Numbered from the stretch's first letter, positions 5,147 to 56,230 are shown. The stretch: 64,000 bases of DNA from IMGVR_UViG_3300028536_000014:62001-126000, one strand, 5' to 3'. Notes: a model not told the origin generated them from the sequence alone. Numbers and translations: made by a program.

Positions 5147-6358
5147 TTAGCGTTTGTTATTCGCTAAGAGCACGATACCTTTCGGTTCGTTCGCATTGTG
5201 ATAGGCTATCGCCGCTTCATCTCGGATGTTTATAGCAGCATTAACATCTCGATCATGGGTTTGATGACAGTGAGGACAGGTCCAAGTTCTTTCTGACAAC
5301 TTTAACTTACGATCAAGACGTTGTTGACAACTGCTACAAATATGACTTGAAGGGTAATAAGCATCCATAACGACTACAGAACAATGTCCAGATTCCTGGG
5401 CTTTATAGATCACGAAGGTCTTAAAGGTAGACCACGCTGCGTCTGAGATGTGTTTCGCTAATCGATAGTTTTTGACCATATTACTAGGCACAAGCGCTTC
5501 GAGTCCGATGACTTGGTTTTCGTCGACGAGGATTCGAGAGAGTTTGTGTAGATGGTCTTGACGTGCGTTAGCGATATGTTGGTGTATGGTAGAGACTTTA
5601 AGACAGGCTTTCTTGCGGTTATGGCTACCTTTGACTTTACGAGCTAAGGATTGTTGAGCCCGTTTAAGCTTTAAAGCGTATTTTTTAGTATGATGAGGGT
5701 TATCGATCTTGGTACCGTCTGAGAAAGTAAATAGAGACGTTAGACCTGCATCGATACCCGTAATTTTAGTACCTTTAGTAATATTAAATTCGTATTCACA
5801 AATAAAACAAACATAATACTTACCACTAGCTCTTTTAATTATAGTTAAAGAAGAAGGAGCTGATGGAAGTTCACGGTGCCATTCAATTTTAATAGGGTTA
5901 TCACATTTCGCTATGGTGAATTGACCATTTCTTATTTGAAAACCATCTCTCATTAAAGAGAATGTTTGTCGACCTTCTTTCTTTTTAAACCTAGGATACC
6001 CAATCCTCCGTCGGAAGAAATTAGAATAGGCTGTACCAAGATGTAACATCTCTTGCTGAAGGGCTGTAGCGATAGCTTCTTTTAACCATTCACAAATTGG
6101 GTCTGCTTTATAAATAGGAAGTCGTTTAACAAAATCATACCCGGTGGAGATAGGACGAGAAAGGTTAATAACCCCTTGTTCTTTTAAAGCTAGCCAGTTT
6201 TCATATTCTAGTTTAGCTTCTGATAATCCTCGATTAAAGACATATCGACAACATCCGAAGTTCTTAGCCAAGAATTCTTTCTGACTATCTGTAGGATATA
6301 TCCGAAAACAATAACCTTTTTTCATAATTGACGATATCCAATGTACTTCTACATACAA
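5147..6358 (-). mobile_element. tnpB: IS200/IS605-family RNA-guided endonuclease TnpB, no tnpA nearby
   Basis: N-terminal HTH (YCFRIYPT..Q...FGCCRYVFN), RuvC residues GIDAG, GLEAL and DRDVNAAINI, zinc finger CSSC...CPHC. Confidence 0.92.
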
Positions 6359-6532
6359 TATAGATACCAGTGAGATATAATTTTAGTGGTGCACTACGAT
6401 ACTCCGGAGTCCCATCCATATCGGTGGGTCGTCAGACGCACACGCGCAACGTCATGCTGTGTTTCCGTGTCTGACTAATGGAACTTCAGGTGATGTAAAA
6501 ACACTCATTATTGTATTCATTTGATTTTAGTC

Positions 6533-7135
6533 CTAAACATGTAGAATCGAATCCTCATTCTTTATAGACGTAATCGTATTAACACGTCTAAATTTTAGAC
6601 TGTAATGATTAAATCGACCATTAAGAATCATGTTGATTAAATCATAAATCCTATTATCATTACGATTAATAATATCGCCATTCTTATCAGTGATATCTTT
6701 TACATAAAAAGAATATCCATGAACTGTTGAATGACCATTATCAATACGAATACTACCACTCATCATCACGTGACAATTCAGTTTTAGATCTTCTTTGACA
6801 ATTTGGTTAAGTGTTCCAGATAGAGGTTCACCAACAGCTGTAAGCGTATTCTTATCGATAAGAATAGAACTGTAATTAGCATTCAAACTCAATCGCATAA
6901 ATTCAGATGAATTTTTCAATACGAATTTGAACTGTGGTAGATTCTCAGTTTGAAACCACAATATTTGATTATCGATTTTCATCGAGAACTGATAAAGTTG
7001 AATATCGGGATGAAGTCTATCAGTACGACTTACACTGCCGTCTTCAATAGCTTCATTTGTCAAAGTGATATCGAGAACATCTCGCATATCGTCAAACGGT
7101 AAAATGATCTTGTAGATTTTACTTTCGTCAGTCAT
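6533..7135 (-). CDS. Hypothetical protein
   Basis: 200-aa ORF. Confidence 0.55.
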   Translation of the reverse strand: MTDESKIYKIILPFDDMRDVLDITLTNEAIEDGSVSRTDRLHPDIQLYQFSMKIDNQILWFQTENLPQFKFVLKNSSEFMRLSLNANYSSILIDKNTLTAVGEPLSGTLNQIVKEDLKLNCHVMMSGSIRIDNGHSTVHGYSFYVKDITDKNGDIINRNDNRIYDLINMILNGRFNHYSLKFRRVNTITSIKNEDSILHV

Positions 7136-7955: not shown

Positions 7956-8156
7956 TCAACGACGGATCAGTACTCCTCCAGCAGATCGGATATCACGGAC
8001 ACCTTTCCAAGTTGTATCCTTCTTGTTATTAGAACTGGGTGCAGATTGATCAGAAGCACGATTGGTATGCCCCTGACATTGACACGCTTGTGATTTGGGC
8101 TGAAGCACACCACAAGTGCACTCTTTTGGCCATCCAAAACAAGTTGTACAAAACAT
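7956..8156 (-). CDS. Hypothetical Cys-rich small protein
   Basis: 66-aa ORF preceded by AGGAG. Confidence 0.4.
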   Translation of the reverse strand: MFCTTCFGWPKECTCGVLQPKSQACQCQGHTNRASDQSAPSSNNKKDTTWKGVRDIRSAGGVLIRR

Positions 8157-8219
8157 AAACTTTCTCCTTAAAACATATAAAAACCACAGATAAGGAAGTC
8201 CTTATCTGTGGTCGATGGA

Positions 8220-8669
8220 TTACACAACGAACTTCAGGTAATCCCAGAGTGCCTGAGCCTTCTCAGACTTTCCAAGACTCTTCAGATGTTGGTAAGCTTC
8301 CGGGTGATCGAACAACCACTGATTGATTCTTGCGAACTCATCAGCATTTCGCCTGATCTGAACATCCACATTCAGTTTCCGGAATACACTAACACCAGGG
8401 ATACCATCGTATCCTTCACCGGAACCAAGAATGACGAAACCATTCTTGATCAACCAATTACAAACATCTTCGTCTTTTTGAACGAAGAAATCGTAATCAG
8501 AGTTCAGTTTCGCATCACCGAAGTAACGCGAACCGGTTAAGGTGAAAACGAATGAAGCCGTTTTCAACAACTGGATAGGGGAACGAACATCACCCAAGTC
8601 TCTGGGTTTCGTGATGTACTTCAGCATGACAATCTCCTGTTGCGGGTGGGAACTGCACAAGTACAGCAA
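8220..8669 (-). CDS. Pol-beta-superfamily nucleotidyltransferase-like protein
   Basis: LTGSRYFG.....SDYDFFV (GS...DxD) and a later VDVQI. Confidence 0.55.
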   Translation of the reverse strand: MLYLCSSHPQQEIVMLKYITKPRDLGDVRSPIQLLKTASFVFTLTGSRYFGDAKLNSDYDFFVQKDEDVCNWLIKNGFVILGSGEGYDGIPGVSVFRKLNVDVQIRRNADEFARINQWLFDHPEAYQHLKSLGKSEKAQALWDYLKFVV

Positions 8670-8923
8670 TTTATATATTTACAATAACCCACGAAACAGA
8701 ACATCATCAAGCAGTAGTTTGTATTGACGCCTTCTCAGAACAGATAACTAGAATACCGTTTCTGAAAAGGACTTTCATTCTACAACCAATATTTTGTTTA
8801 TCTAGTATAGCTCACGACCGAGTGGCGAATCGTGAACATTTCTTTGTCAGCCACCGTTCACAGATATTCGAAAAGCCACACCAAGGCTCTCTGCGTAACG
8901 AGTGTTCTTTCTAAAAACATAAC

Positions 8924-8999
8924 TGGTGGACCGTGATGGACTCGAACCATCGACCGACGGATTAAAAGTCCGCTACTCTACCAACTGAGTTAACGGTCC
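8924..8999 (-). tRNA. tRNA-Lys(UUU)
   Basis: Canonical cloverleaf, anticodon loop CTTTTAA, TTCGAGT T-loop, encoded CCA. Confidence 0.95.
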
Positions 9000-9057
9000 A
9001 TATACGACAAACATTTGTATAACCTTTGTATCCAAGAAAATCAAAACATTATGAGTA

Positions 9058-9131
9058 TGGGCGCGGTGAGATTCGAACTCACTATTTACCGATTATGAGT
9101 CGGGACCTTATACCTAATTAGGATCACGCCC
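9058..9131 (-). tRNA. tRNA-CAU (Ile2-like or elongator Met)
   Basis: Cloverleaf with CGA-CTCATAA-TCG arm resembling Ile2 tRNAs; CCA not encoded. Confidence 0.85.
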
Positions 9132-9234
9132 ATTGTCGAAACGATTCATGCTTTTCTCTTGAGTAATTATACAAACTTTATACTCAAGAAAACTCTATCA
9201 AGATATAATTAATGAGAGTTTTCTTGAATACTGA

Positions 9235-10030
9235 GCGACAGAAAATCTGATCTTCTCCTCCAAATTACGGCACGACCACTACTCACCTCGGCCGAAGTGA
9301 AGGTGTGGTTCATCCGATTGTTGAAAGAGAAGATCGGGTCGGTTCCTCCTCACTTATGATTTTGATCCCAATCAGCAATACATCTTCCGTTAGACGGACG
9401 ACATACTGATTTACTGACAGAGTATCTCACTAAGAATATTGGATTCTTCTAACAGGACTGTAAAGACAATCCATGGTTTTTTACAACGGTGATCGTTCGC
9501 CACAGCTGTTAACAAAGTTAAATTCGCTGCCGACCTTTGGCATTTTCTGGCAAAGCCAGAGCCCCTGTACCGGATGTTCATTTACCAAGTTACCAGGCTG
9601 AATCTGATCAGGGAACCATCAGCTGAATGGCTATTGATCAGACTATGAGAACTCATTAAACAAACTGTTGGCATACTAGTCTAATCCAACATAACGATAA
9701 TAGGGCTAAATACAAACGATTGCTCGGAGCATGTGGATCTCCACTGATGTTGTCGGGCATGACCACCGAATGCATTCGGCTAAGTCTTGGGATCGTGGAT
9801 TCGTACACTTACTGCTACCACTCAGTTGGCGCAAGTTTTAGTGCACTTACCACACCGTAAAGTACAACTCGAGGTACCGCTACAGGCATCGCCTGCAGAC
9901 CCGTAGGTCTGCAGGCGATCCGACGTCTACAAGACCGAACAAGAGATCTCGTAGTTTTTAACCCTAATCCCCACACATTGTAGAAAGTAATGCGCCGGGA
10001 AAAGGGAATATTAGATAGCCGAGTTATCGA
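9235..10030 (-). ncRNA. Candidate large structured ncRNA of unknown class (~0.8 kb)
   Basis: No ORF of 60 aa or more; 14-bp stem with cUACGg loop (9888-9919) and a cUUCGg loop (~9290) read on the minus strand; long hairpin at 9180-9232. Confidence 0.5.
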
Positions 10031-10040
10031 CTCTCCTTAA

Positions 10041-10538
10041 TTAATGTCTCACTATGCTAACAGATGCCGATTCACCAACAGGCTTGTCAATTCCGGTTGA
10101 TTTACTTCCAGATGTGTCTTTGAATGCGTTGACCGCTTGCATCAGCTGTTCATCAGACAATGAATCTTGTTCGATATTTAATGATTGGCCACTTGCAATA
10201 ATAGTAAGAAGTTCGTTTGAATTGTCGTCAATAATATCGAGACAAAATTTGAAGAAAGTGTTTCGAACAGTGGCTCTCAAACCTAGTGAGAAGTTTGCTT
10301 GATTTGTCCATATGCAGCCGATTGAAAAATCATCGGTGAGATGGTCGTCGTGATAATGTTGGAAGACCTTCTTGAAATCGAGTGCTTCCATACAGCAAAG
10401 AGGACCGCTGAAGGTACCACCACCAGCAGTGTTATGAGACCTGCCGATAAGTGCGGTCAGTTTGGCGTGATATTCCTCGAAAACCGCTACCTGAGTAGCA
10501 AAATCTTCAATGTTCATCACAGACTCCTTTTTAGTCAA
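10041..10538 (-). CDS. Hypothetical protein
   Basis: 165-aa ORF within the tRNA region. Confidence 0.55.
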   Translation of the reverse strand: MTKKESVMNIEDFATQVAVFEEYHAKLTALIGRSHNTAGGGTFSGPLCCMEALDFKKVFQHYHDDHLTDDFSIGCIWTNQANFSLGLRATVRNTFFKFCLDIIDDNSNELLTIIASGQSLNIEQDSLSDEQLMQAVNAFKDTSGSKSTGIDKPVGESASVSIVRH

Positions 10539-10576
10539 ATATCCTTAAAACAGAAAAGATACTGGACTAAAAAAAT

Positions 10577-10652
10577 TGATCCTTTCCCCCGCAACAATCA
10601 AGGCGCTGTGAGAACTCGTCTCGGGCCAGGTTGTATCTAAGAGGAAAGGATC
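10577..10652 (-). repeat. Hairpin element, copy 1, carrying the 21-mer CTGGCCCGAGACGAGTTCTCA
   Basis: Exact 21-nt match at 10609-10629 and 12598-12618; closed by GATCCTTTCC/GGAAAGGATC. Confidence 0.8.
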
Positions 10653-10895
10653 CTGTCTTTTTCATTGCTGCATTGATCCTTCACTTCTGATCTCTGCAAA
10701 CAGATGTGTGCACACACATCGTCATTTTCATTTGTTGTCAGCACGGTGCATAGGTGAGTTCACGTGCGCATATCATTTCTTCCTGTCATAAGCTACCTAC
10801 TTGTTATTTCCACAAGCCGGATTTTTCAGTAGCCCAAACGTGTTTAGTATCCCTAAAATATTAAACACAACCTTCCGCTATTGGCCCTACAAAAC

Positions 10896-11041
10896 TGGTC
10901 AGTCACGGTGTGATTCGAACACACAGCCAAATTGGTCCTTACGCCGAACACCCAATTTGGTACCAACTTTCCATTATCGATATCATGAGTCTCGATAACT
11001 TCTTTGCTAGTAACGTCTACCGTAATTCCGCCACGCGACTG
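10896..11041 (-). tRNA. Non-canonical 146-nt tRNA-Leu-like RNA with extended anticodon and variable arms
   Basis: Acceptor (C)AGTCGCG/CGTGACT(G), discriminator A, CCA; Leu-type D arm TGGCGGAATTACGGTAGACG; T arm GTGTG-TTCGAAT-CACAC. Confidence 0.7.
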
Positions 11042-11049
11042 TTTGAAAA

Positions 11050-11153
11050 TGGCGATCACTCTAGGATTCGAACCCAGCCCCTTTCCGATCGTGTTCAATA
11101 GGCTCTTTGTTTCCTATCGTTCCTATAGACCGAACTGCTTCATCCCAGTACTC
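11050..11153 (-). tRNA. Non-canonical tRNA-like RNA (104 nt), identity unclear
   Basis: T arm CTGGG-TTCGAAT-CCTAG, acceptor GAGTACT/AGTGATC (6 of 7 pairs), G-CCA end; no 7-nt anticodon loop. Confidence 0.55.
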
Positions 11154-11241
11154 GTCTTATACTCAATCAAAGATACTCTCTAGAATTCTCTCTGATCTTT
11201 CTTTGGTTTTCCTGTTCTCTTAGCTTAGTGACCATTGACTA

Positions 11242-11703
11242 TTATGCCGCTAAAGCGGCATCGATTGCATTGATGGCATATAACGTAAAATTAGTTATTT
11301 CTTTACCATCAGAACCCAATTGTGTTATTCCAGCCGTACGAAACTTAACCCTGTCTTTGAATGCATTGGGGTTTTGGTTGAATAGATTTTGTAAAACTAA
11401 CCCTTGTGGTGTTCTAAGAAGACGTATATCGGCAAATAAACTACCATCTTTAATGGTCAGTCTTTCTACGCGATGACTAACTTTGTCTTCAGGAACTTTA
11501 AGAGCGTCGTATGGATCTGGTAACGTTCTTAAATCAGGCATTCCAATTTGTCCAAATATCGGAAACTCACTATTCTTTAAAGTCCGAGACACAACGTCAG
11601 ATGAATAGATTCTGTCATTTTTATTGGGTTTATCCAACGTCATGACTTCGACATCATGTACGATAATGTCTCGTGTAATACAATCGCAATCTTCATCGTA
11701 CAT
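11242..11703 (-). CDS. T4 gp21-like prohead protease homologue with apparently substituted catalytic residues
   Basis: NKNDRIY...FGQIGMP...VSHRV..L..KDG.L.ADIRLL.TPQG..L...FRTAG, resembling NRNGR.Y/GELGHP/VSH/TP.G/SSRG. Confidence 0.55.
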   Translation of the reverse strand: MYDEDCDCITRDIIVHDVEVMTLDKPNKNDRIYSSDVVSRTLKNSEFPIFGQIGMPDLRTLPDPYDALKVPEDKVSHRVERLTIKDGSLFADIRLLRTPQGLVLQNLFNQNPNAFKDRVKFRTAGITQLGSDGKEITNFTLYAINAIDAALAA

Positions 11704-11739
11704 GATGTCTCCTTGAATTCATCACAAATTGTTTTGAAA

Positions 11740-11994
11740 CTAGTGTCCGTAATTACAACCGATCTTGGCTCTTTGACCATTCACTTCGATAATGGTATCG
11801 AAAATACCGCAACATCCTTCATCACGAGCTCTTTGATATTTATCCAAAGCAGCCTCGTCATTCAGATATGCGAATCGACGATTATCGATGCAGTGATCGT
11901 CCACATGTCTTTCCATCCACTCAAGAGCTTCTTCTTGAGTAGCAAAACTTCTTTCTTCTTCTCCGTCGGATGACGTGAAATCGACGATTGTCAT
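11740..11994 (-). CDS. Hypothetical acidic protein
   Basis: 84-aa ORF. Confidence 0.5.
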   Translation of the reverse strand: MTIVDFTSSDGEEERSFATQEEALEWMERHVDDHCIDNRRFAYLNDEAALDKYQRARDEGCCGIFDTIIEVNGQRAKIGCNYGH

Positions 11995-12216
11995 ATCGGA
12001 TTCCTTGGATGATGATAGTTAAGCTACTTCAAAAGCTTCGATATGCTTCGAAGAAATAGTCGCGATTAACGGAAAGAAATCAGGGTCCTTCCCTTCTTTG
12101 ATCCATTGTTTGTAAAACTTCTTTTTGAACCTATAGTTCTTCCATGGAACAGATAGATTGTAAAAGAACAAATTGACTTTCTTACGAAAGGTCATACATC
12201 ATCTTTTAATGTTAAG

Positions 12217-12290
12217 TGGTTGGAGGACTAGGACTCGAACCTAGATTAATGACGTCAAAGGACACCGTCCTACCATTAGACGATCCTCCA
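12217..12290 (-). tRNA. tRNA-Gln(UUG)
   Basis: U1-A72 acceptor TGGAGGA/TCCTCCA, anticodon loop CTTTGAC, CCA. Confidence 0.9.
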
Positions 12291-12566
12291 TCATAATCAC
12301 TTAATCATTAGAAAGAAAATAGGAACAGTTCCGGTTTCCAGGTAAAAACACAAACGTGTCATTTCATACTCCAATCAATAAACCCTTAGACGAGCACACG
12401 ATCACTACGCCTGGTATCACTGGTCCGAATGGGGTTGCAGGGGGGACCCATTCAGCTGAGGCGAAGTTTAACCAAATACCTTCATAATCCATAATTGTAA
12501 CAACGACATCATTAGAATTAGAAGGTTTTCATGAACGTGTGCTCCTCTAAAGATTCACATTAGAAG

Positions 12567-12643
12567 ACCCCTTTCATCATTAACGTCACTGGCACAATGA
12601 GAACTCGTCTCGGGCCAGCCGTCCTTATTTGACGAAAGGGGTC
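12567..12643 (-). repeat. Hairpin element, copy 2, carrying the 21-mer
   Basis: GACCCCTTTC/GAAAGGGGTC stem enclosing CTGGCCCGAGACGAGTTCTCA. Confidence 0.8.
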
Positions 12644-13268
12644 ATGCCACATGCAATATTGGTTTCAACTCCCTTTGAGCGCGATGCTCTCTGCAGAGTT
12701 CCACCATCGAAAGTGTACGAACACTCTCTCTTTCTGCTTTTTCAGCGTGCGGTTAATACACAAGTTAGGACTAGTTGGTTTTGAGTGCCGTAACACTCAC
12801 CTAGGTAGTCCTTGCTGGCTTATGCCAGTAGCCGCGTAACAAACAACACGGGTTTACAAATTATGACCCATATCGTTACGCGGCTATTCGGAGCCTAACG
12901 TCTTCATGTGAGGTATCTCCTCTTGTTGGCAGGTCAAAAGACTTCTCGTAAGAAGCCTGAACATGATGTCGGTGGCGAAAGGTAAGCGGTACCCTCGCAA
13001 CCTGTGACATCACACCTTTCTTACAACGTTTGCCCGAACGAGCTTATGGATTCTCCCCATCTGGCTCGGTGATCTTTCGATCTATTGCCGAAACAGTTCG
13101 GCATAACAACACGGCGGGCAGGTGCTCCTTAACGCCTTTCGGCATACCCTATCTCGAAAGATAGATCAGTCATTCAAGAACAAGAGCGGATCCTTGAATC
13201 AAGACGTAGTGATCGCCGATACCTCGGAGTATCGGTTTAGTTACCGTTAACGTCATACTACCATGCTA

Positions 13269-13360
13269 AGATCAGTGAAGGATGCTATTTCAAGGACGAC
13301 TCCACCGTAATTGGCATCACGGCTTCAAAGTCTCGCATCTATCCTACACATCAAAGATCC
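13269..13360 (-). rRNA. 23S rRNA L1-stalk (H76-H78)-like segment embedded in a phage ncRNA; not a complete rRNA
   Basis: TTGATGTGTAGGATAGATGCGAGACTTTGAAGCCGTGATGCCAATTACGGTGGAGTCGTCCTTGAAATAGCATC: 56 of 74 nt identical to the E. coli sequence as recalled, differences keep pairing. Confidence 0.85.
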
Positions 13361-14150
13361 GTTAAAGTTTCAACAGTACTAAACTAAACCGCGTGAAAGA
13401 AAACACGGGGCGTAACACCGCACCGAAAGAGGGTGAGTATGTTCGTATAGCCCCAGATCATGATCCGCATTCTGTTACCCCAGTCACGTAGGTTAGAGAA
13501 TAACACGAATCACGATTGTTTTCTTTTGTTTAGCGTTCCTGCTAACGATTGCATTGGGTTAGTCCCACGTCCACATTCTGGATGCTCATTTCCAGACTCA
13601 GTTTTCGATGGAGCTTTGGTAACATTCTTTTCGTTGACCTTACCATTTTGATAAGGCTAGAAGTAATAGCGACTTCAAAGAACATGTCTATTGATCAGTG
13701 TATCAAGCACAGACCGTTACGTTGGTCTGTGTTGAATCCCGCTCCAGTTTCCCGGCTACGGCTTCTCCCGTCGATGTTCACTTTTACGAAAAGAATTCAT
13801 TGCTTGGTATAAAGCTTGATGGTAATGGCTTCGCCAGTGTTTATACCACCTGCGCATGGACGATCTCTCCTCCACGACTCACCATTGTTACGAGGCATGC
13901 ATTTGCCCAACACCATTCTGCATTTACCAACCAATACATATATCTGACTTTTTTGATCAGATTAAACGATAATACAAGCACTCCATTAAGCACTCGCGTA
14001 GTGCTCAACAGGCTGCTTCCTCAGACGTAAATAGATCACAAGGTCTACATATCTGAATAGACAACTTGACTAGTCGTGGCCACAACCAATCCGTAGGGTT
14101 TGAATAGTTTCGAATGCCTTCGCTACTACCCCTTCGCAAATCACCCTTAG

Positions 14151-14211
14151 CTGTTATACTTATTTTAATGTTAAAATAAGTTTCGTCCCTTAAAGGACTC
14201 GTCAGTAACAG
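14151..14211 (-). ncRNA. Hammerhead ribozyme (type I)
   Basis: CTGTTA-CTGACGA-GTCC(TTTAAG)GGAC-GAA-ACTTATTTTAA(CA)TTAAAATAAGT-A-TAACAG; predicted cut after GUA, between 14157 and 14156. Confidence 0.9.
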
Positions 14212-14225
14212 TTTTATTCTACAAA

Positions 14226-14301
14226 TGGTGCCCCTGTCTGGTACCGAGCCAGATTCCCTGGCTTACAAAGCCAGACCTCATCCATTAAAGGCTTCAGGGG
14301 C
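14226..14301 (-). tRNA. tRNA-Thr(UGU), atypical T loop
   Basis: GCCCCTG/CAGGGGC acceptor, anticodon loop TTTGTAA, T loop CTCGGTA, CCA. Confidence 0.85.
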
Positions 14302-14308
14302 ATGTTTG

Positions 14309-14782
14309 TCAATTGACGATATTATTTCTCGTCTTGTATTCCTGAATAGCGGCGTTGATTTGATCGTCTGTCAGAAGAAGAACATCGACAATTGAAAAAT
14401 ACATGACGAGCGTTTCATCACCTGTGATTTCTCGTATTTCTTCAACGAAAATGCTATACTTGGCTGGTTCACCAGGAAACAAACCGACAATGATTTCGAG
14501 GCTCACGTTAGAATCATCACGAATCGTACCATCATCATTGGCTGGATACCAATCCAAGCGATACTCGGAGTCCTCATGACATCCAAGATCTTCTTTACCA
14601 TCGATGATCAGATCGAACTCATGTTCACCGAGTTCGACAGAACCAAGACCGTTCGGTTCAGAACTCAAAGCTTCGGTTATCTTGGCAACATATTGAGCGA
14701 AGCGAGCTTTCTCTCGAATGTTTTTCCGAGAATCTTTCTCTACTTCTTCTTCGTACTCTTCATCAAGTTCAGTCATGTTCAA
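14309..14782 (-). CDS. Hypothetical acidic protein
   Basis: 157-aa ORF. Confidence 0.55.
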   Translation of the reverse strand: MNMTELDEEYEEEVEKDSRKNIREKARFAQYVAKITEALSSEPNGLGSVELGEHEFDLIIDGKEDLGCHEDSEYRLDWYPANDDGTIRDDSNVSLEIIVGLFPGEPAKYSIFVEEIREITGDETLVMYFSIVDVLLLTDDQINAAIQEYKTRNNIVN

Positions 14783-14810
14783 CTCCTCTGTTGCGTGCTA
14801 TACCTCTGAG

Positions 14811-15008
14811 TTACTTCGGTTGTTTTGGTTTCAGTTCTTTGACAGAGCCAACAAGAGGTGCGCCGTATCGGCTCCGTAGCAACATCCCACCTAAACGCAA
14901 TCGCTGACCTGGAGTGGCGTTTTTGAATCTGTCAGATGCCATCAGAGTCTCCAAATTCTTCTTGAAGGTTGTGATTCCGCTGAAGGACATATCGTTTCCT
15001 TTTAACAC
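14811..15008 (-). CDS. Hypothetical basic small protein
   Basis: 65-aa ORF. Confidence 0.45.
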   Translation of the reverse strand: MLKGNDMSFSGITTFKKNLETLMASDRFKNATPGQRLRLGGMLLRSRYGAPLVGSVKELKPKQPK

Positions 15009-15012
15009 AAAA

Positions 15013-15062
15013 TGGTCCCCGGAGCCGGAATCGAACCGGCACGCCTTACAGCGAGGGATTTT
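15013..15062 (-). pseudogene. 3-prime half (exon 2) of a tRNA-Leu(UAA)-type gene; 5-prime half decayed
   Basis: AAAATCCCTC-variable arm-GCCGGTTCGATTCCGGC-TCCGGGG-A-CCA; upstream exon keeps only AGGGAACTT, with no matching acceptor strand or D arm. Confidence 0.75.
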
Positions 15063-15706
15063 CTTACCACTATAGCTTTCGCTACCATTAAGAAGTATTC
15101 AGCCTTCACTCTTATAGAGTTATTAACTCAGAGCTATTCCTTACTAACTTCTACATGTTTGTGGTCTGGACTGTACCTTAACCTTAGTTCCAACAGAACT
15201 TTTGATGACTCAGCTACACGGTTTCCCGGCTTTTTATCGAAGTTACTTCGCTAGTCAAAGAAATGCTAATTACTAGAATTAGATCATCGCAATGAAAACT
15301 TTAGGTTGTTGCCTACCAGTCTCTACACGTTTTCTTCTCAAGAACAGTCTGTGGAGATCTAATGTTCTATCCCGGTATCATTACTCCCCAACCATTTCTG
15401 GTCACCGGCTCACATCTACCATACGGTAGCTATTGAAGAATTTCGCTCGGTATTAGCATATGAACTGCAACAGACAACTCACTTAGCTTTCACCGACTTT
15501 GACAACATTCACCCTAGCCCTTACCCCGTTGATATTATCTCTGGACGATGATATCTCTATCACCTATTTATAATGGATGCTAGTTTATACGTCTTTCGAT
15601 TGAGTTGTTTCATGAGGGTAGTGAGAGCTTCAACTCACATAAGCTTTTATTCTTCCAACTCTGTTTTACCAACTCATTTTTCGTAGGTGCTCAAATTAAA
15701 GTACTT
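15063..15706 (-). ncRNA. Group I intron, ORF-less (644 nt), in the tRNA-Leu anticodon
   Basis: P1 CTT|AAG with TTTGAG (U.G at the splice site); core motifs AAAGTCGGTGAAAGCT, GCTAATACCGAG, GTAGAGACTG, AAGGTACAGTCC; terminal G. Confidence 0.88.
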
Positions 15707-15738
15707 AAGTTCCCTTTTCTACAAACTACCAACAACAT

Positions 15739-15824
15739 TGGTGCCCAGGGGGGGACTCGAACCCCCAAAAACCACGGGTTTTAAGCCCGCAAAATGTGCC
15801 ATTCTTTATTAGGTTCACCCAGGC
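15739..15824 (-). tRNA. tRNA with UAA anticodon (Leu), enlarged D region and no long variable arm
   Basis: GCCTGGG/CCTGGGC acceptor, GCGGG-CTTAAAA-CCCGT, GGGGG-TTCGAGT-CCCCC, A-CCA. Confidence 0.75.
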
Positions 15825-15833
15825 TAATACAAA

Positions 15834-16697
15834 TCAGAGATAACTGTATTCTAAATCAGCTATCTTTGCAAAACCTTTTCTTCTTACTTGGTGATTAACA
15901 GCATCGTAACTATGACCGGTTTCTTTGATAGCTTCAGTTAAAGAATTATATATCGTTACTAACTTCCTCACGATATCTTTAACACAAACTATTTTGCGAT
16001 ACCCACCAGTTCTATGACCGTTAACAATATTTCCTTCACCAAGCTGTGTCATTTTCTTAAGATCAAGAATTGGCCACGGATTTCCATCAGCATATTTAAA
16101 CGCGTGATAATCAACGTGATAACCAAAGTTAAGACCTTTTCTTAAACATTTAGAAACTGTTGCTGGATGAACTTCAAATCTTTCGGAGAATTCTCTCAAC
16201 GAATACATAAGAAATTCTCTTGGTTCTAAACCAAGATATTTAACTGCGATAGGTTTGTTATCGCTCATAAATCCAGACAATCGTGCATGTTCTACATTCT
16301 CTTTTCCAGTACACCATTCAAGGTTATCTGGAAGATTATGTAGTTGATTTCCATCACAATGATTAACTTCTAAATTACTAAAAGATTTATCTAGATGTCT
16401 AGATGGTCGACCAATGAAAGTTTTTGCTATCAATCGACTAAATTTATGACATACAGGTTTTTTGCCAGGGCTTGTTATAATTACACCTACCGTACCATTA
16501 CCAGAAAGTTGTGGTTTTAACAAGTTACCTGTATGTATGTTTACTATTTTTCCATCTCGACTAACACCAAGTCTTTTGTCATCAGGAAAGTAAAAGAAGT
16601 TATCGAAACCGAGTACCGGTTCAGGATGAACTTCTTCCAAATCAGAAGGATCATTCATCCTTACTACGGCACTCATATCAAGACTCCTGTTGTTCAA
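15834..16697 (-). CDS. Free-standing HNH homing endonuclease (NUMOD4/HNH type)
   Basis: VSRDGKI...LKPQ...RLIAKTFI...VNHCDGNQLHNLPDNLEWCT.KEN..HA. Confidence 0.88.
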   Translation of the reverse strand: MNNRSLDMSAVVRMNDPSDLEEVHPEPVLGFDNFFYFPDDKRLGVSRDGKIVNIHTGNLLKPQLSGNGTVGVIITSPGKKPVCHKFSRLIAKTFIGRPSRHLDKSFSNLEVNHCDGNQLHNLPDNLEWCTGKENVEHARLSGFMSDNKPIAVKYLGLEPREFLMYSLREFSERFEVHPATVSKCLRKGLNFGYHVDYHAFKYADGNPWPILDLKKMTQLGEGNIVNGHRTGGYRKIVCVKDIVRKLVTIYNSLTEAIKETGHSYDAVNHQVRRKGFAKIADLEYSYL

Positions 16698-16750
16698 AAT
16701 GTGTATTCCAGTTCCACCACGCTTCCACAGTCGTGTGACACATTATTGCA

Positions 16751-17080
16751 TTACTTGGAAACGATTTTCTTCTTCTTTGGTTTGCTTCTTGGTGTGTATT
16801 TGACCTTAAGCAATGGAAGATTCTTCCAAGTTGTTTCGTTATTGCTATACGACTGTCCGAAGATCAAGACATCACCGATTCTAAAACAATCAGACGTTGT
16901 CTTGATTTCAACCAACTCGGTTGTACCAATTTGACCACCTATATAAAGGTGTCGTTCTCCAACAGCGATGATTTCGATATGAGAATCACGCTTATTTGAA
17001 GCTGGTAGATGTTGAAAAGGAATCGAAAGAATGTATCCTTTCAACTTCCCTCTGGGTTTGATTGGTAATGAAGTTTTCAT
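16751..17080 (-). CDS. Hypothetical protein, paralogue of 20464-20790
   Basis: Shared pattern GKL...IP...EIIA...G..GT..LVEI.T..D...I.DV. Confidence 0.55.
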   Translation of the reverse strand: MKTSLPIKPRGKLKGYILSIPFQHLPASNKRDSHIEIIAVGERHLYIGGQIGTTELVEIKTTSDCFRIGDVLIFGQSYSNNETTWKNLPLLKVKYTPRSKPKKKKIVSK

Positions 17081-50492: not shown

Positions 50493-50832
50493 CCTTACCT
50501 TCAAGTAGAATCGTTACTTCTACTCCGTGTTGATACACAGCTCTAACTTTCATTAGAAGAGGAGAACATATCACGATCTCTTTCGAGACCCCTTCCATTT
50601 CAGCTCACTTGAGCCTACTCCGCGCTACCGGATGTTCGTTGAACGTTTTTCTGACGGATCAGAAACTTCGCTGCGGATTATCCAATCTTCTTATTTGTTA
50701 CCATACCTGAGTGATTAGTTCAGCCATTGTTATATCACTATAACAACTTGGTATAAGAAGCTCTAAAGGACTTTCCCGACAATTAGAAAGGTGCTATTCA
50801 GATATCACTATCTGAAAGGACTAAAACTGTTA
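50493..50832 (-). ncRNA. Group I intron, ORF-less (340 nt), in the RNAP catalytic motif
   Basis: P1 GAT|TAA with TTAGTC; AATTGTCGGGAAA, AATCCGCAGC, GTTCAACGAACAT/ATGTTC (P7); terminal G. Confidence 0.92.
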
Positions 50833-52071
50833 ATCAGCGTTCATGCTCGTTGTGATCAAAATACTGACTCCAAATGTCAGATCCTTCGGATCGTTTTTAA
50901 CTCTTGGAATATAAACCTTCTGAATGGAACCTTGAAGCAAAGATGGAAATCGATTAAACAAGACTGGATAACGCCCATCTTTAGTATCAGAGATAATTTC
51001 TTTCAGATATTGATCAAGCAGTGGATGATAAATTTCAGTATGAGATAGAAGAAGTCCCACAGCGTCATTAATCAACATTCCACTTTTCTTGATAAGCTTG
51101 TTAATGAGCATCGGTCTGAAAATCGTTAAACCAACACCCCAAGGTATTTCAATTTCATCATATCGATGTGCGTCTGTTATCGAAGAGATAACAGCTCGTG
51201 CGGAATAATCGAATCGAGATCCACCGATATAATGTCGAAAGAGTCCAGACTTCTTAGCAACGATCGTCTTGAAATAACTGTCATAAAACTTACAGCTAAG
51301 AAGATACATCGCTCTAGCTGTACGATTTTCTTTAACAGAAACTGTTTGATTATGAAAATCTTTATCGATCGATACCAACATTTCGATAGCTTCAAGTGCT
51401 AACGGAACGGTACTGTCGATATAAGTGGCCAGAGATGTTTTCTCGATAACCAAGAGAGACTTATTCAGTAAAGGAATATAATCCGAGAACAAAATATCTT
51501 TCTTAACTGTTAAAAGATCAGCAAGATAATCTCGTCCTATTCCTTTGATTTTAAAATCTTTCAGACTCATCAAGAATTCGATGATCGATTGAAAATTCTG
51601 AACGAAGTAATTATATCCACGTTGAATACCAGCTTGTTCAATTTTATCTACGACATCAGGACGATTGATCTGAGGTGAATATGTTGTATCAGTTAACCAT
51701 CTCAAGATGCTAAATTTTGATTTGCTAAATCGATAATCCAACATAATCCAGATTATTGGTGACATCAATTTCTCAACACCAATAGGTTTTCGAAACCAAA
51801 CCAACGGTTCAATGGTGTTTTCAATCGCTGCACTGACGAGTGTGTCGCAGTGTTCACAAATCGTATTCTTACTGAATTCTCCTTTTGTCATTCCACATCG
51901 ACACGAAGGAAGAATTGTCACCATGTCACTTGAATAAGTTGTGGTGATTAATTGTTCAATACGTTCACGATCTTTCGTGGTAGTGTTAAGCAAGTCGTTT
52001 ATGATAATCGGAGGGTTCTTGAGCCCCTCGAACATCATATTGTTATCGATCAAACTCTGGATAATAGGCAC
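50833..52071 (-). CDS. Exon 1 of the non-virion RNA polymerase beta-prime-like subunit (phiKZ gp55-like); spliced product 473 aa
   Basis: Zinc finger CRCG...CEHC, K.GLFR..I.GSR.DYSARAVIS, FNRFPSL, ends SMNAD. Confidence 0.9.
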
Positions 52072-54367: not shown

Positions 54368-56230
54368 TTACCAACGAGCCTGGAAATAAGCTGATGCCGC
54401 AGCCGGTGTTGAACCATAACCACCCTGACGCATGTAGCTCTGACCAGTACCCAGCAATGCCTGCTGAGCATAAGTTGCCACACCACGTGCGTTGTAGAAG
54501 TCGTTGCCAGACATCGGTGTCCGGATATTGACCTGTAGGTTCTGAGTAGCGATAGCCGCGTCAAGCGCCGATAAGAAAGCACCAGTAAAAGTCACACGCT
54601 GATAGTAGCCCGTAAACTTCGCGGTATCGTTAGAAAGTTGCATAAGCATCTTCCGACGCGCTTCCAGTCGCAGATTCTCCGGATATTCCAAACGCAGGAA
54701 GGTATCAGACCATTCACGAATCATGGCCGGATTGCGTTGTCCGACGATATTCGCTACAGCAGCGTAGTCGAAATCACGCAGGTCACGCTTGTTGCCCTGG
54801 TTGTCTACCCAAGTACCAGCATGGATACGTTCCGATTGTGTTGCGAACAACGGAGTACCCATTTGGAAATGCTTGGCGTACTCACCATTGGTCAGTTCAT
54901 TGGCAGACTGGATGATGCGCTTGTAAGCACCATCGACGCCACGGGCCGCAGCCATGAAGACACTGAGATAATGGGTCTGCGGACCATACTCTGGAATATC
55001 CATCGAAATCATGAGATCGCTATTGAACAGAGCGGCAATATACATGCCGAGCTGTTCTGATTTGAAATCGTCAGACTTGGTGTCGATTGGCAAACCAAAC
55101 CCGCTTGTGTTGGTTGCCAGAATACCGCTAGGTTGCGGTACTGGCAAATTGCCTTCGTAGTTGTAGGCGCCAGGATCTGTGATGTCAAGCTCCTTCTTGG
55201 AGACAGCCATCGGACGAAACGCTTGGATCCAGTTTGACGATGGACGTAGTGCCAGTGCCGTCGAGAGTGCCAGCAGAACCGATGCTGTTGTTTGAGCAAC
55301 GTTGGCGGTAATGTCGGTGATCACTTGACGAGCGACAAATTTCCGAGTTTGAGCCATCTGCTGAGGCGCAAATGCCTGACCAAGTCCGCCGTTCGGATCT
55401 TGTGCAGGAAACCAGACCGCATCCACGAAACTGGAAAGAGTGGAGAAGTTCGCATTACGATCGCCAGTGTTCATCTGACGACTATCGCGATCTACGACCT
55501 TACGATCGGAGAAATTGATAAGCACGTCACTACGATAGACATTGCCAGCTGCATCTTCGAGTGTCTGACGAGCAAATGTCACATCGACCTGAGCCTGACC
55601 ACGCTTGTTCAGATTGGCGAGGTTGAGATCTTTGAAACCAGGTGTCCGAGAATTGAGTTCGGTAACACCAGCCATTGCAGCAGTCAGAGCCAGACGATGA
55701 ACCTGGGTCTTGTTAACTGGATTGAAGTTGCTATTGACGACTGTGCCGTCAACGAAGAGCACCTTGTTTGTGTTGTAAGCGGTCTCGATAATCCGCCGAG
55801 CTTTGCGAACCAGAATGTCGTTGATCGCATCGGACGGAACGCGATAGATCATTACGGTACGATCGTAGATCTGGTCCGAATACGGTTGGATTTCTTCACC
55901 GGTTTCGGCGAGAAGGATGATGTAAACAGCGACACCCAGTTCCGGCATGTTCTGCAATCGCGTGGCCACGAGAATGCAAGAGAAGTCGAGCGCTGGATCG
56001 GTTGCCCGACTCAATTCGACCACACCGATATCGACACTGCGGTCAGCGAGCTTGTAAATCTCGATCAGAGCCGTCTTGACACTATTGTAATACTCCGAAC
56101 CCATTCCACGCGGAATCGGGGCATTGAAGAGACCACCGTCATGCATGTTCCAACCGTTCTGACCTGCGGATGCGGCTGCTGCACGCGGATCACCATTGCT
56201 TGCACCACTACCTTCGTTAACAATACTCAC
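54368..56230 (-). CDS. chmA: Chimallin, phage nuclear shell protein
   Basis: 620 aa; GN..RSD, VITD, IDTKSDDF..EQLG, GTW.D..G.KRDLRDFD, TG..QRVTF...F..ALD resemble recalled 201phi2-1 gp105; sits upstream of the gp55-like RNAP subunit as in phiKZ. Confidence 0.88.
   Translation of the reverse strand: MSIVNEGSGASNGDPRAAAASAGQNGWNMHDGGLFNAPIPRGMGSEYYNSVKTALIEIYKLADRSVDIGVVELSRATDPALDFSCILVATRLQNMPELGVAVYIILLAETGEEIQPYSDQIYDRTVMIYRVPSDAINDILVRKARRIIETAYNTNKVLFVDGTVVNSNFNPVNKTQVHRLALTAAMAGVTELNSRTPGFKDLNLANLNKRGQAQVDVTFARQTLEDAAGNVYRSDVLINFSDRKVVDRDSRQMNTGDRNANFSTLSSFVDAVWFPAQDPNGGLGQAFAPQQMAQTRKFVARQVITDITANVAQTTASVLLALSTALALRPSSNWIQAFRPMAVSKKELDITDPGAYNYEGNLPVPQPSGILATNTSGFGLPIDTKSDDFKSEQLGMYIAALFNSDLMISMDIPEYGPQTHYLSVFMAAARGVDGAYKRIIQSANELTNGEYAKHFQMGTPLFATQSERIHAGTWVDNQGNKRDLRDFDYAAVANIVGQRNPAMIREWSDTFLRLEYPENLRLEARRKMLMQLSNDTAKFTGYYQRVTFTGAFLSALDAAIATQNLQVNIRTPMSGNDFYNARGVATYAQQALLGTGQSYMRQGGYGSTPAAASAYFQARW

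Follow-up and report, generated by a model that had tools for sequence, protein, structure and literature searches.

A stand-alone copy of the ribosomal L1-stalk RNA in the tRNA cluster of a nucleus-forming jumbo phage, and similar copies in other large phages

Background

The L1 stalk of bacterial 23S rRNA consists of helices 76-78 (H76-H78; E. coli nt about 2093-2196), carries the binding site of ribosomal protein uL1, and possesses two T-loops that dock the tRNA elbow (PMC4810234). Isolated 55-80 nt fragments of this region fold on their own and bind L1, more tightly than does the regulatory mRNA site of L1 (PMC2175363; Tishchenko 2012, cited secondarily). L1 recognizes a bulged stem, and the bulge nucleotides together with the flanking pairs make the critical contacts (PMC3616713). 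The same site is mimicked outside the ribosome by the autoregulatory leader of the rplK/rplA (L11) operon, which shares the bulged stem with the G-A pair and the unpaired A (PMC3616713). Interdigitated T-loop modules, used to dock the tRNA elbow, occur in three RNA classes, the other two being RNase P RNA and T-box Stem I (PMC4810234). Protein-sequestering RNAs, such as CsrB/RsmZ for CsrA and 6S RNA for the sigma-70 holoenzyme, imitate the natural nucleic-acid target of a protein and titrate it. Large phages carry tRNA arrays, tmRNA, translation factors and a few ribosomal proteins, including uL1 and uL11 encoded by the jumbo cyanophage PhiMa05 (PMC13157829), whereas full-text literature searches for a phage-encoded L1-stalk RNA, or for any selected rRNA fragment in a phage, found no report.

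Identification of an L1-stalk element

The DNA analysed, hereafter the window, was a 64,000-nt stretch (IMGVR_UViG_3300028536_000014:62001-126000) of a phage contig of 244,725 bp. A sequence-only reading had proposed that 13269-13360 contains a copy of H76-H78 under structural selection, with 56 of 74 identities to E. coli 23S over 13281-13354 and 17 of the 18 differences located in stems that remain paired. That observation proved correct. In a scan of the window against Rfam 15, the bacterial large-subunit rRNA model matched 13270-13359 on the minus strand at 63.6 bits (gathering score 50; E 2e-16; model positions 2126-2215) without gaps and with a posterior probability of 1.00. Rfam 15 has no dedicated family for such an element, since only the LSU model hit. 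When aligned without gaps to the 23S rRNA gene of E. coli NCTC86 (rrl, about nt 2100-2189), the element was 67/90 identical, and over 13281-13354 identity was exactly 56/74, with 17 of 18 differences in stems that keep the pair. Of the 23 differences over all 90 nt, 21 were in stem positions whose pair is kept, one was unpaired (13296, A to U), and one broke an H76 pair (13275). The probability that at most 1 of 23 differences falls in the 36 unpaired positions was 1.9e-5 (hypergeometric). The stem changes listed previously were all correct, that is, H77 GGUGG/CCACC to GAUGC/GCAUC, lower H78 GGC/GCC to GAC/GUC, and the upper H78 changed to GCCGUGAU-GCCA-AUUACGGU. The features of the element and its surroundings, all on the minus strand, were as follows.

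13270-13359 (-): the whole stand-alone L1-stalk element, 90 nt, comprising H76, H77 and H78 with their loops; it scored 102.4 bits with a covariance model built in this study (R1, see below) and was the only copy in the window
13349-13359 (-): H76, 5' strand (GAUCUUUGAUG), pairing with 13270-13280 according to the Rfam structure line
13340-13348 (-): unpaired UGUAGGAUA, first T-loop region, in which GUAGGAUAG was invariant in all 12 aligned copies
13335-13339 (-): H77, 5' strand (GAUGC), pairing with 13281-13285 (GCAUC)
13330-13334 (-): GA bulge plus lower H78 5' strand (GA-GAC), the core of the uL1 site by analogy with rRNA, GAC pairing with 13298-13300; G-A-G was invariant in all 12 copies
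13304-13323 (-): upper H78 hairpin, GCCGUGAU, loop GCCA, AUUACGGU
13286-13303 (-): GGAG, the lower H78 3' strand, and unpaired GUCCUUGAAAUA, second T-loop region; GGAG and U-G..AUA were invariant in all 12 copies
13270-13285 (-): 3' strands of H77 (GCAUC) and H76 (CUUCACUGAUC)
13389-13408 (-): terminator-like hairpin about 30 nt upstream of the element, which may mark the end of an upstream transcript or be a processing structure; it was found by consensus scan only, and the number of such sites was not above the shuffle expectation
13119-13152 (-): second motif, about 120-150 nt 3' of the element, a GCC-GAAA-GGC hairpin followed by UAAGGAGCACC
12291-14225 (-): ORF-poor, hairpin-rich spacer between tRNA-Thr and tRNA-Gln that holds the element, possibly one processed polycistronic RNA
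12217-12290 (-): tRNA-Gln(UUG), the next tRNA gene downstream (ARAGORN and Rfam)
14226-14301 (-): tRNA-Thr(UGU), the next tRNA gene upstream (ARAGORN)

The motifs GUAGGAUAG, GAG, GGAG and UGAAAUA were identical to those of E. coli; thus, the sequence motifs of both T-loops were the same as those of the rRNA, the three-dimensional fold being inferred from sequence alone. The junction of H77, the GA bulge and H78, which in the rplK/rplA leader corresponds to the internal bulge with a G-A pair and an unpaired A, was retained. Thermodynamic folding of the element alone was not significant (z -0.6 to -1.2), as expected for a domain held together by tertiary contacts, and was not used as evidence.

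Genomic context in a nucleus-forming jumbo phage

The window encoded a chimallin (54368-56230, Pfam PF25677), a fragment of a PhiKZ-type capsid protein, a piece of a multisubunit RNA polymerase, a TnpB transposase and group I introns, indicating that it belongs to a nucleus-forming, PhiKZ-like jumbo phage of about 245 kb. No close relatives were found: megablast against phages returned nothing, a search with the capsid-protein fragment returned only the same contig, and the chimallin was only 33% identical to its closest cultured relative, that of Burkholderia phage FLC9. An independent metagenome contig (Ga0137416_10000001, 244,771 bp) was 100% identical over 13,261 bases around the element and the flanks are not rRNA; thus the element is not an assembly artefact. 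Short rRNA-containing records do contaminate phage collections, but a chimera or rRNA contamination is very unlikely here, also because five contigs carry the version found in a second phage, L009 (see below).

The element lay on the gene-bearing strand in a cluster of five same-strand tRNA genes at 8.9-15.8 kb, in the 1.9-kb spacer between tRNA-Thr and tRNA-Gln, about 870 nt from the upstream and 980 nt from the downstream tRNA. This spacer had no ORF above 110 aa, its small ORFs had no PHROG hit, and folding z-scores ran from -2 to -4 over 12500-13250. The element does not form part of a 23S rRNA gene, since a sensitive Rfam scan of 8000-17000, at E up to 1, found no other LSU match; nor did it find RNase P, T-box, GOLLD, ROOL, introns or another known RNA in the spacer, and blastn against a true 23S found only the L1 stalk, with weak similarity extending about 24 nt upstream of H76. 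Pfam scans of the ORFs of 60 aa or more in the window found no ribosomal-protein gene, uL1 included, and no uL1 gene was found next to the other copies. Numbers of predicted sigma-70 promoters and terminators were at the shuffle expectation, and PhiKZ-like phages use their own polymerases.

Search for the same variant in 23S rRNA

Compensated differences from E. coli, on which the sequence-only reading had based its case against neutral decay, do not by themselves prove selection in the phage, because any two bacterial 23S rRNAs differ by compensated changes and a fresh, unselected copy from another host would look the same. A pattern fitting the window copy, including its unusual G after GAAAUA, was therefore searched for. 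In the JGI metagenomes it matched only six stretches, namely the window phage, a second phage (four contigs) and one further contig; in one genome for each of 185,579 species it matched a single place, which was not inside a 23S. Thus, the window copy is not a verbatim copy of any sequenced 23S, although many metagenome-assembled genomes lack rRNA genes.

The single genome hit was in CP175956.1, a complete chromosome of a Candidatus Moraniibacteriota (CPR) bacterium, where the L1-stalk copy was preceded by a sigma-70-like promoter sequence and followed by a hairpin with a T-run, just upstream of the rpsL-rpsG promoter; these signals were read from the sequence, not scanned. Some Parcubacteria lack uL1 or helix 78 (PMC9297842). 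The unpaired motifs that had been taken as proteobacterial, hinting at the host group, were also identical in this CPR copy and in most of the other viral-contig copies, being part of the invariant core; the inference of a proteobacterial host is therefore not supported.

Stand-alone copies in other viral contigs

Because the Rfam LSU model missed several clear copies (L003, L004 and L105; L numbers denote loci compared in this study), covariance model R1 was built. Scans of IMG/VR for L1-stalk motifs, filtered with R1 and checked against Rfam, revealed at least nine other distinct stand-alone copies in viral contigs, none in a 23S gene, at the following loci.

L009/L100: 191-kb contig, the second phage detected by the pattern search
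L002/L003: contigs of 117 and 59 kb, next to a multisubunit RNA polymerase beta-prime gene with an intein, a baseplate J-like gene and DUF7873
L113, L114: contigs of 413 and 410 kb, in dense tRNA arrays
L116, L122: contigs of 105 kb each, in dense tRNA arrays
L117, L118: contigs of 119 and 70 kb, tRNA 519 nt downstream
L121: 42-kb contig, with an 84-nt insertion in H78
L119: 16-kb contig, which has a terminase
L004: 43-kb contig, copy cut by the end of the locus
L001: 2.5-kb contig, copy cut by the end of the locus

Two more hits (L112 and L120) looked like contamination or chimeras and were set aside. The window, L009/L100, L002/L003, L119, L113/L114, L116, L122 and L117/L118 scored 71-102 bits with R1, had no surrounding 23S and were closed by their own H76 stem; L121 scored 47 bits. 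No cultured phage carrying the element was found, as blastn searches of the INPHARED collection with five different versions returned only contaminating rRNA records or the neighbouring tRNA; three cultured Mimasvirus-type jumbo phages with a similar tRNA-Arg (CBB, XbC2 and Kaldavass) have an unannotated gap upstream of it but no L1 stalk.

Covariation of stems and invariance of loops

In an alignment of 12 sequences (10 stand-alone copies plus two true 23S), 92.8% of cells formed standard pairs, compared with 68% in shuffles and 35-52% when partners were slid, and 16 of 21 pairs showed changes on both sides; none of 500 shuffles reached the observed values. H77 and lower H78 were paired in 100% of cells, 3 of the 5 H77 pairs and 7 of the 8 upper H78 pairs having changes on both sides; a smaller set of sequences agreed. 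In contrast, GUAGGAUAG, the bulge GAG and GGAG were invariant, while in UGAAAUA only U-G..AUA was. A closing H76 stem was predicted in every lineage but with a lineage-specific sequence, for example a 12-bp A+U-rich stem in L002, and in every copy aligned in full the similarity to rRNA ended at H76. This is the signature of a module kept for its fold.

These findings bear on the possibility that the element is a neutral passenger, a piece of host 23S rDNA acquired by illegitimate recombination whose compensated differences would simply reflect the rRNA of the donor. Recent capture does occur, as the core of L004 is 64/68 identical to E. coli 23S, and the weak similarity upstream of H76 in the window would be compatible with it. 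However, no 23S with this variant was found in the collections searched, only this domain gave an Rfam match in the phage loci scanned, the copies differ from each other by double changes in the stems, and many have a fixed position in tRNA arrays, so that a neutral passenger is disfavoured and considered unlikely. The earlier interpretation is thus supported in part: the element is a copy of H76-H78 outside any rRNA gene with structure under constraint, on evidence firmer than the comparison with E. coli, whereas its uL1-sponge mechanism is plausible without having been shown and its host assignment lacks support.

Association with tRNA genes

In L113, L114, L116 and L122, the element lay inside dense arrays of same-strand tRNA genes with the next tRNA starting 41-43 nt downstream, and in L117, L118 and L121 a tRNA followed after 519 nt; the element sits in tRNA clusters in the window, where the association is looser, and in at least seven other viral contigs. 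In the L113/L116/L122 family, about 45 nt on each side were conserved as well. No tRNA was called in L009/L100 and L119, nor in L002/L003, although tRNA-like fragments follow the element in the latter. The simplest reading, inferred in the absence of RNA data, is that the RNA is transcribed with the tRNAs and released when they are matured.

The second motif of the window, the GAAA-capped hairpin followed by UA.GGAGCA.C about 140 nt downstream, was present at a colinear position in the unrelated 191-kb phage contig (L100 1446-1480), both elements lying in long ORF-poor structured regions. The raw blastn E-value was 2.7, and a rough rescaling to colinear 300-nt windows gave about 4e-4; elsewhere in IMG/VR the pattern gave only two matches, both apparently inside protein-coding sequence. 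Core identity between the window and L009 elements (51/68) was no higher than to E. coli (50/68); only the shared downstream motif suggests common ancestry.

Possible functions

The best explanation is that the element is a genuine gene for a small structured RNA, kept under selection by the phage and expressed together with its tRNA genes. What the analysis establishes is the homology to the L1 stalk, the location outside any rRNA gene in a nucleus-forming jumbo phage on the same strand as five tRNA genes, the recurrence of stand-alone copies in other large phages, often 41-43 nt upstream of a tRNA in a dense array, and the covariation of stems around invariant T-loop nucleotides and an invariant bulge. 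Expression, excision from a polycistronic tRNA/ncRNA precursor by the enzymes that mature the neighbouring tRNAs, autonomous folding as for isolated fragments in vitro, and binding of free host uL1 with rRNA-like affinity are inferred from sequence and by analogy. An abundant decoy of this kind would compete with nascent 23S rRNA and with the rplK-rplA leader for uL1, which would lift the autorepression of uL1 and change how many ribosomes carry it, and would also yield a free L1-stalk particle able to hold tRNA elbows. A real, selected, stand-alone L1-stalk RNA gene is held at a probability of about 0.85, but the uL1-binding mechanism at only about 0.45.

The bulge G-A-G and the opposite GGAG, which with the flanking pairs make the contacts critical for L1 binding, are invariant in all 12 sequences. 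However, the H77 pair next to the bulge, which is G-C in rRNA (E. coli, locus L005 and the Rfam consensus), is C-G in the window and L119, U-G in L009 and the CPR copy, and A-U in L113, and the scan for the window version found no true 23S in the 185,579 species genomes; since flanking pairs are said to matter (PMC3616713), affinity could be altered. In addition, every conserved nucleotide is equally needed for the T-loop core that docks tRNA, so that conservation does not separate uL1 binding from tRNA binding, and no benefit to a phage of titrating uL1 is known.

The main rival, less likely but serious, is a tRNA-elbow docking module that, alone or as one domain of the roughly 2-kb structured spacer, would hold tRNAs or pre-tRNAs for processing, protection, transport or sensing, with uL1 dispensable or secondary. 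The tRNA clusters, the invariant T-loop nucleotides, the portability of the motif as a tRNA-elbow binder (PMC4810234), the downstream motif shared with L100, and the departure of the bulge-adjacent pair from the rRNA state in 5 of the 10 stand-alone copies aligned, as if the uL1 constraint were relaxed, point that way, and the distance of about 870-980 nt from the nearest tRNAs means that the window element may be one domain of a larger RNA. On the other hand, the uL1 bulge and lower H78, which are not part of the elbow-stacking surface, are also invariant; no RNase P, T-box or other known catalytic or sensing core was detected nearby at E up to 1; and in the dense arrays the unit is compact, with about 45 conserved nt on each side and then the next tRNA, so that a large RNA is not general.

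A cis-acting uL1-responsive element, in which free uL1 would control processing, stability or translation of neighbouring phage RNAs, is unlikely. The L1 leader is a known mimic of the same site, the element of L003 directly follows the stop codon of a DUF7873 gene, and the CPR copy lies upstream of rpsL-rpsG; however, in the window no credible ORF follows for about 1 kb, in the tRNA arrays the next gene is a tRNA, the terminator-like hairpin and promoter-like sequence separate the CPR copy from rpsL, and known leaders keep only the bulged stem. Also unlikely is a decoy for another factor recognizing the L1 stalk, such as a host or rival nuclease or toxin, an ABC-F or E-site factor, or a phage protein, which would protect ribosomes or titrate that factor. 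Preservation of the whole domain, not only the uL1 site, is compatible with it, and phage tRNA clusters are a place where counter-defence RNAs might be expected; but no L1-stalk-specific nuclease or defence system is known, none was found in the literature searched, and no candidate partner gene is conserved next to the copies.

A more far-reaching possibility, tentative and less likely than not, is that large phages encode a previously unrecognized class of translation-related small RNA, a trans-acting, free L1-stalk particle (the RNA with captured host uL1) made alongside their tRNAs, which would act on the flow of deacylated tRNA or on uL1-dependent ribosome function and in some phages, as in this window, would be built into a larger tRNA-handling RNA; the CPR copy, which appears from its flanks to have its own promoter and terminator, suggests that the class also exists in cells. 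If the RNA binds uL1 or tRNA in trans, it would be a new way for viruses to interfere with or re-tool the exit site of the host ribosome, and would add a member to the small set of RNAs that act by imitating the target of another molecule. For annotation, short LSU hits in viral contigs should not be discarded as contamination without a look at their context.

Comparison with known systems

Mimicry of an rRNA site and phage-encoded translation parts are both known, whereas stand-alone L1-stalk RNA genes in the tRNA clusters of large phages appear to be an undescribed, recurrent class, with a fair chance of being more than a variation on these themes. Compared with the L1 stalk of 23S rRNA, the element has homologous sequence, the same three helices, T-loop motifs and uL1 bulge, but it is not embedded in a 23S, is closed by its own H76 stem, is encoded by a phage among tRNA genes, and has C-G instead of the conserved G-C next to the bulge. 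Compared with the rplK/rplA leader, a minimal bulged stem of 6-12 bp acting in cis on a ribosomal-protein mRNA, it likewise imitates the rRNA site outside the ribosome, but it keeps the whole 90-nt domain with both T-loops and upper H78 and has neither rplK/rplA nor a downstream ORF, the next gene being tRNA-Gln about 980 nt away. The T-loop modules of RNase P RNA and T-box Stem I have the structural motif that is inferred here from sequence alone, together with a link to tRNA biology, but they are convergent and not sequence-related to rRNA, whereas this element is a direct homologue of the rRNA version, and no catalytic or specifier domain was detected with it. The proposed logic is that of CsrB/RsmZ and 6S RNA, which are, however, cellular regulators with repeated short motifs or an open-promoter mimic, while this would be a virus-encoded copy of an rRNA domain. 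Finally, among phage-encoded translation components, PhiMa05 carries the protein half of the L1 stalk, whereas no phage-encoded piece of rRNA reported as a gene was found in the literature searched.

Other features of the window

Window 14150-14226, minus strand, hammerhead-like ribozyme
Window 10560-10665 and 12560-12645, minus strand, two paralogous structured motifs
Window 12399-12427 with 13187-13215, long-range complement
Window 10903-10923 and 11056-11076, minus strand, T-arm-like sequences
Window 5147-6358 and 6533-7135, minus strand, TnpB/IS605 OrfB gene next to a 200-aa ORF
Window 50541-50852, 15151-15571 and 15834-16697, minus strand, group I intron, weaker intron-like match and nearby HNH endonuclease gene and tRNA-Leu

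The hammerhead-like ribozyme, located directly after tRNA-Thr, possessed the CUGACGA and GAAAC core, two closed stems and an open stem I, although the Rfam scores were below the gathering thresholds (RAGATH-1-hammerhead, 34.8 bits; Hammerhead_1, 23.4 bits). The two paralogous motifs shared an invariant 21-nt core, CUGGCCCGAGACGAGUUCUCA, whereas the enclosing stems covaried (GGAUCCUUUCC/GGAAAGGAUC versus GACCCCUUUCG/GAAAGGGGUC); no Rfam match was obtained for them, and in IMG/VR the core occurred only in this phage. The long-range complement, with an 11-nt perfect core CGATCACTACG/CGTAGTGATCG, could close a domain of about 800 nt immediately 3' of the L1 stalk. The T-arm-like sequences (GATTCGAAC) were situated outside the tRNAs that were called, and may be degenerate or unusual tRNA-like genes.

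The 200-aa ORF adjacent to the TnpB/IS605 OrfB gene matched only the middle of the PhiKZ major capsid protein; the capsid gene may be interrupted. The group I intron at 50541-50852 scored 59.5 bits, while the weaker intron-like match at 15151-15571 (43.3 bits) was observed near the HNH endonuclease gene and tRNA-Leu.

Features of other loci

Sequences resembling tRNAs that were not called by ARAGORN were observed in two viral contigs carrying an L1-stalk copy. In L003, a 59-kb contig, tRNA-like pieces in permuted order, that is, a T-arm (GGTTCAAATCC) followed by a D-arm-like segment, were located at 6230-6330 (minus strand), downstream of that phage's L1 stalk and a hairpin. In L100, from the 191-kb phage contig, nt 1023-1088 shared 76% identity with the tRNA-Lys of the window.

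The L1-stalk copy at 4965-5115 of L121, a 42-kb viral contig, carried an 84-nt insertion in place of upper H78. In L120, a 6.5-kb tobamovirus-like contig possessing the tobamovirus IRES and the TMV pseudoknot domain, the sequence ended in an L1-stalk-like sequence (6330-6419), which is most likely a chimeric assembly with rRNA.

A stand-alone L1-stalk copy was also present in a CPR bacterium, Candidatus Moraniibacteriota (CP175956.1; locus L107, 1850-2180, minus strand), and the same sequence was in another locus, L105. This copy, which was not in a 23S, was preceded by a promoter-like sequence and followed by a hairpin with a T-run, upstream of rpsL-rpsG. Some Parcubacteria lack uL1 or helix 78 (PMC9297842).
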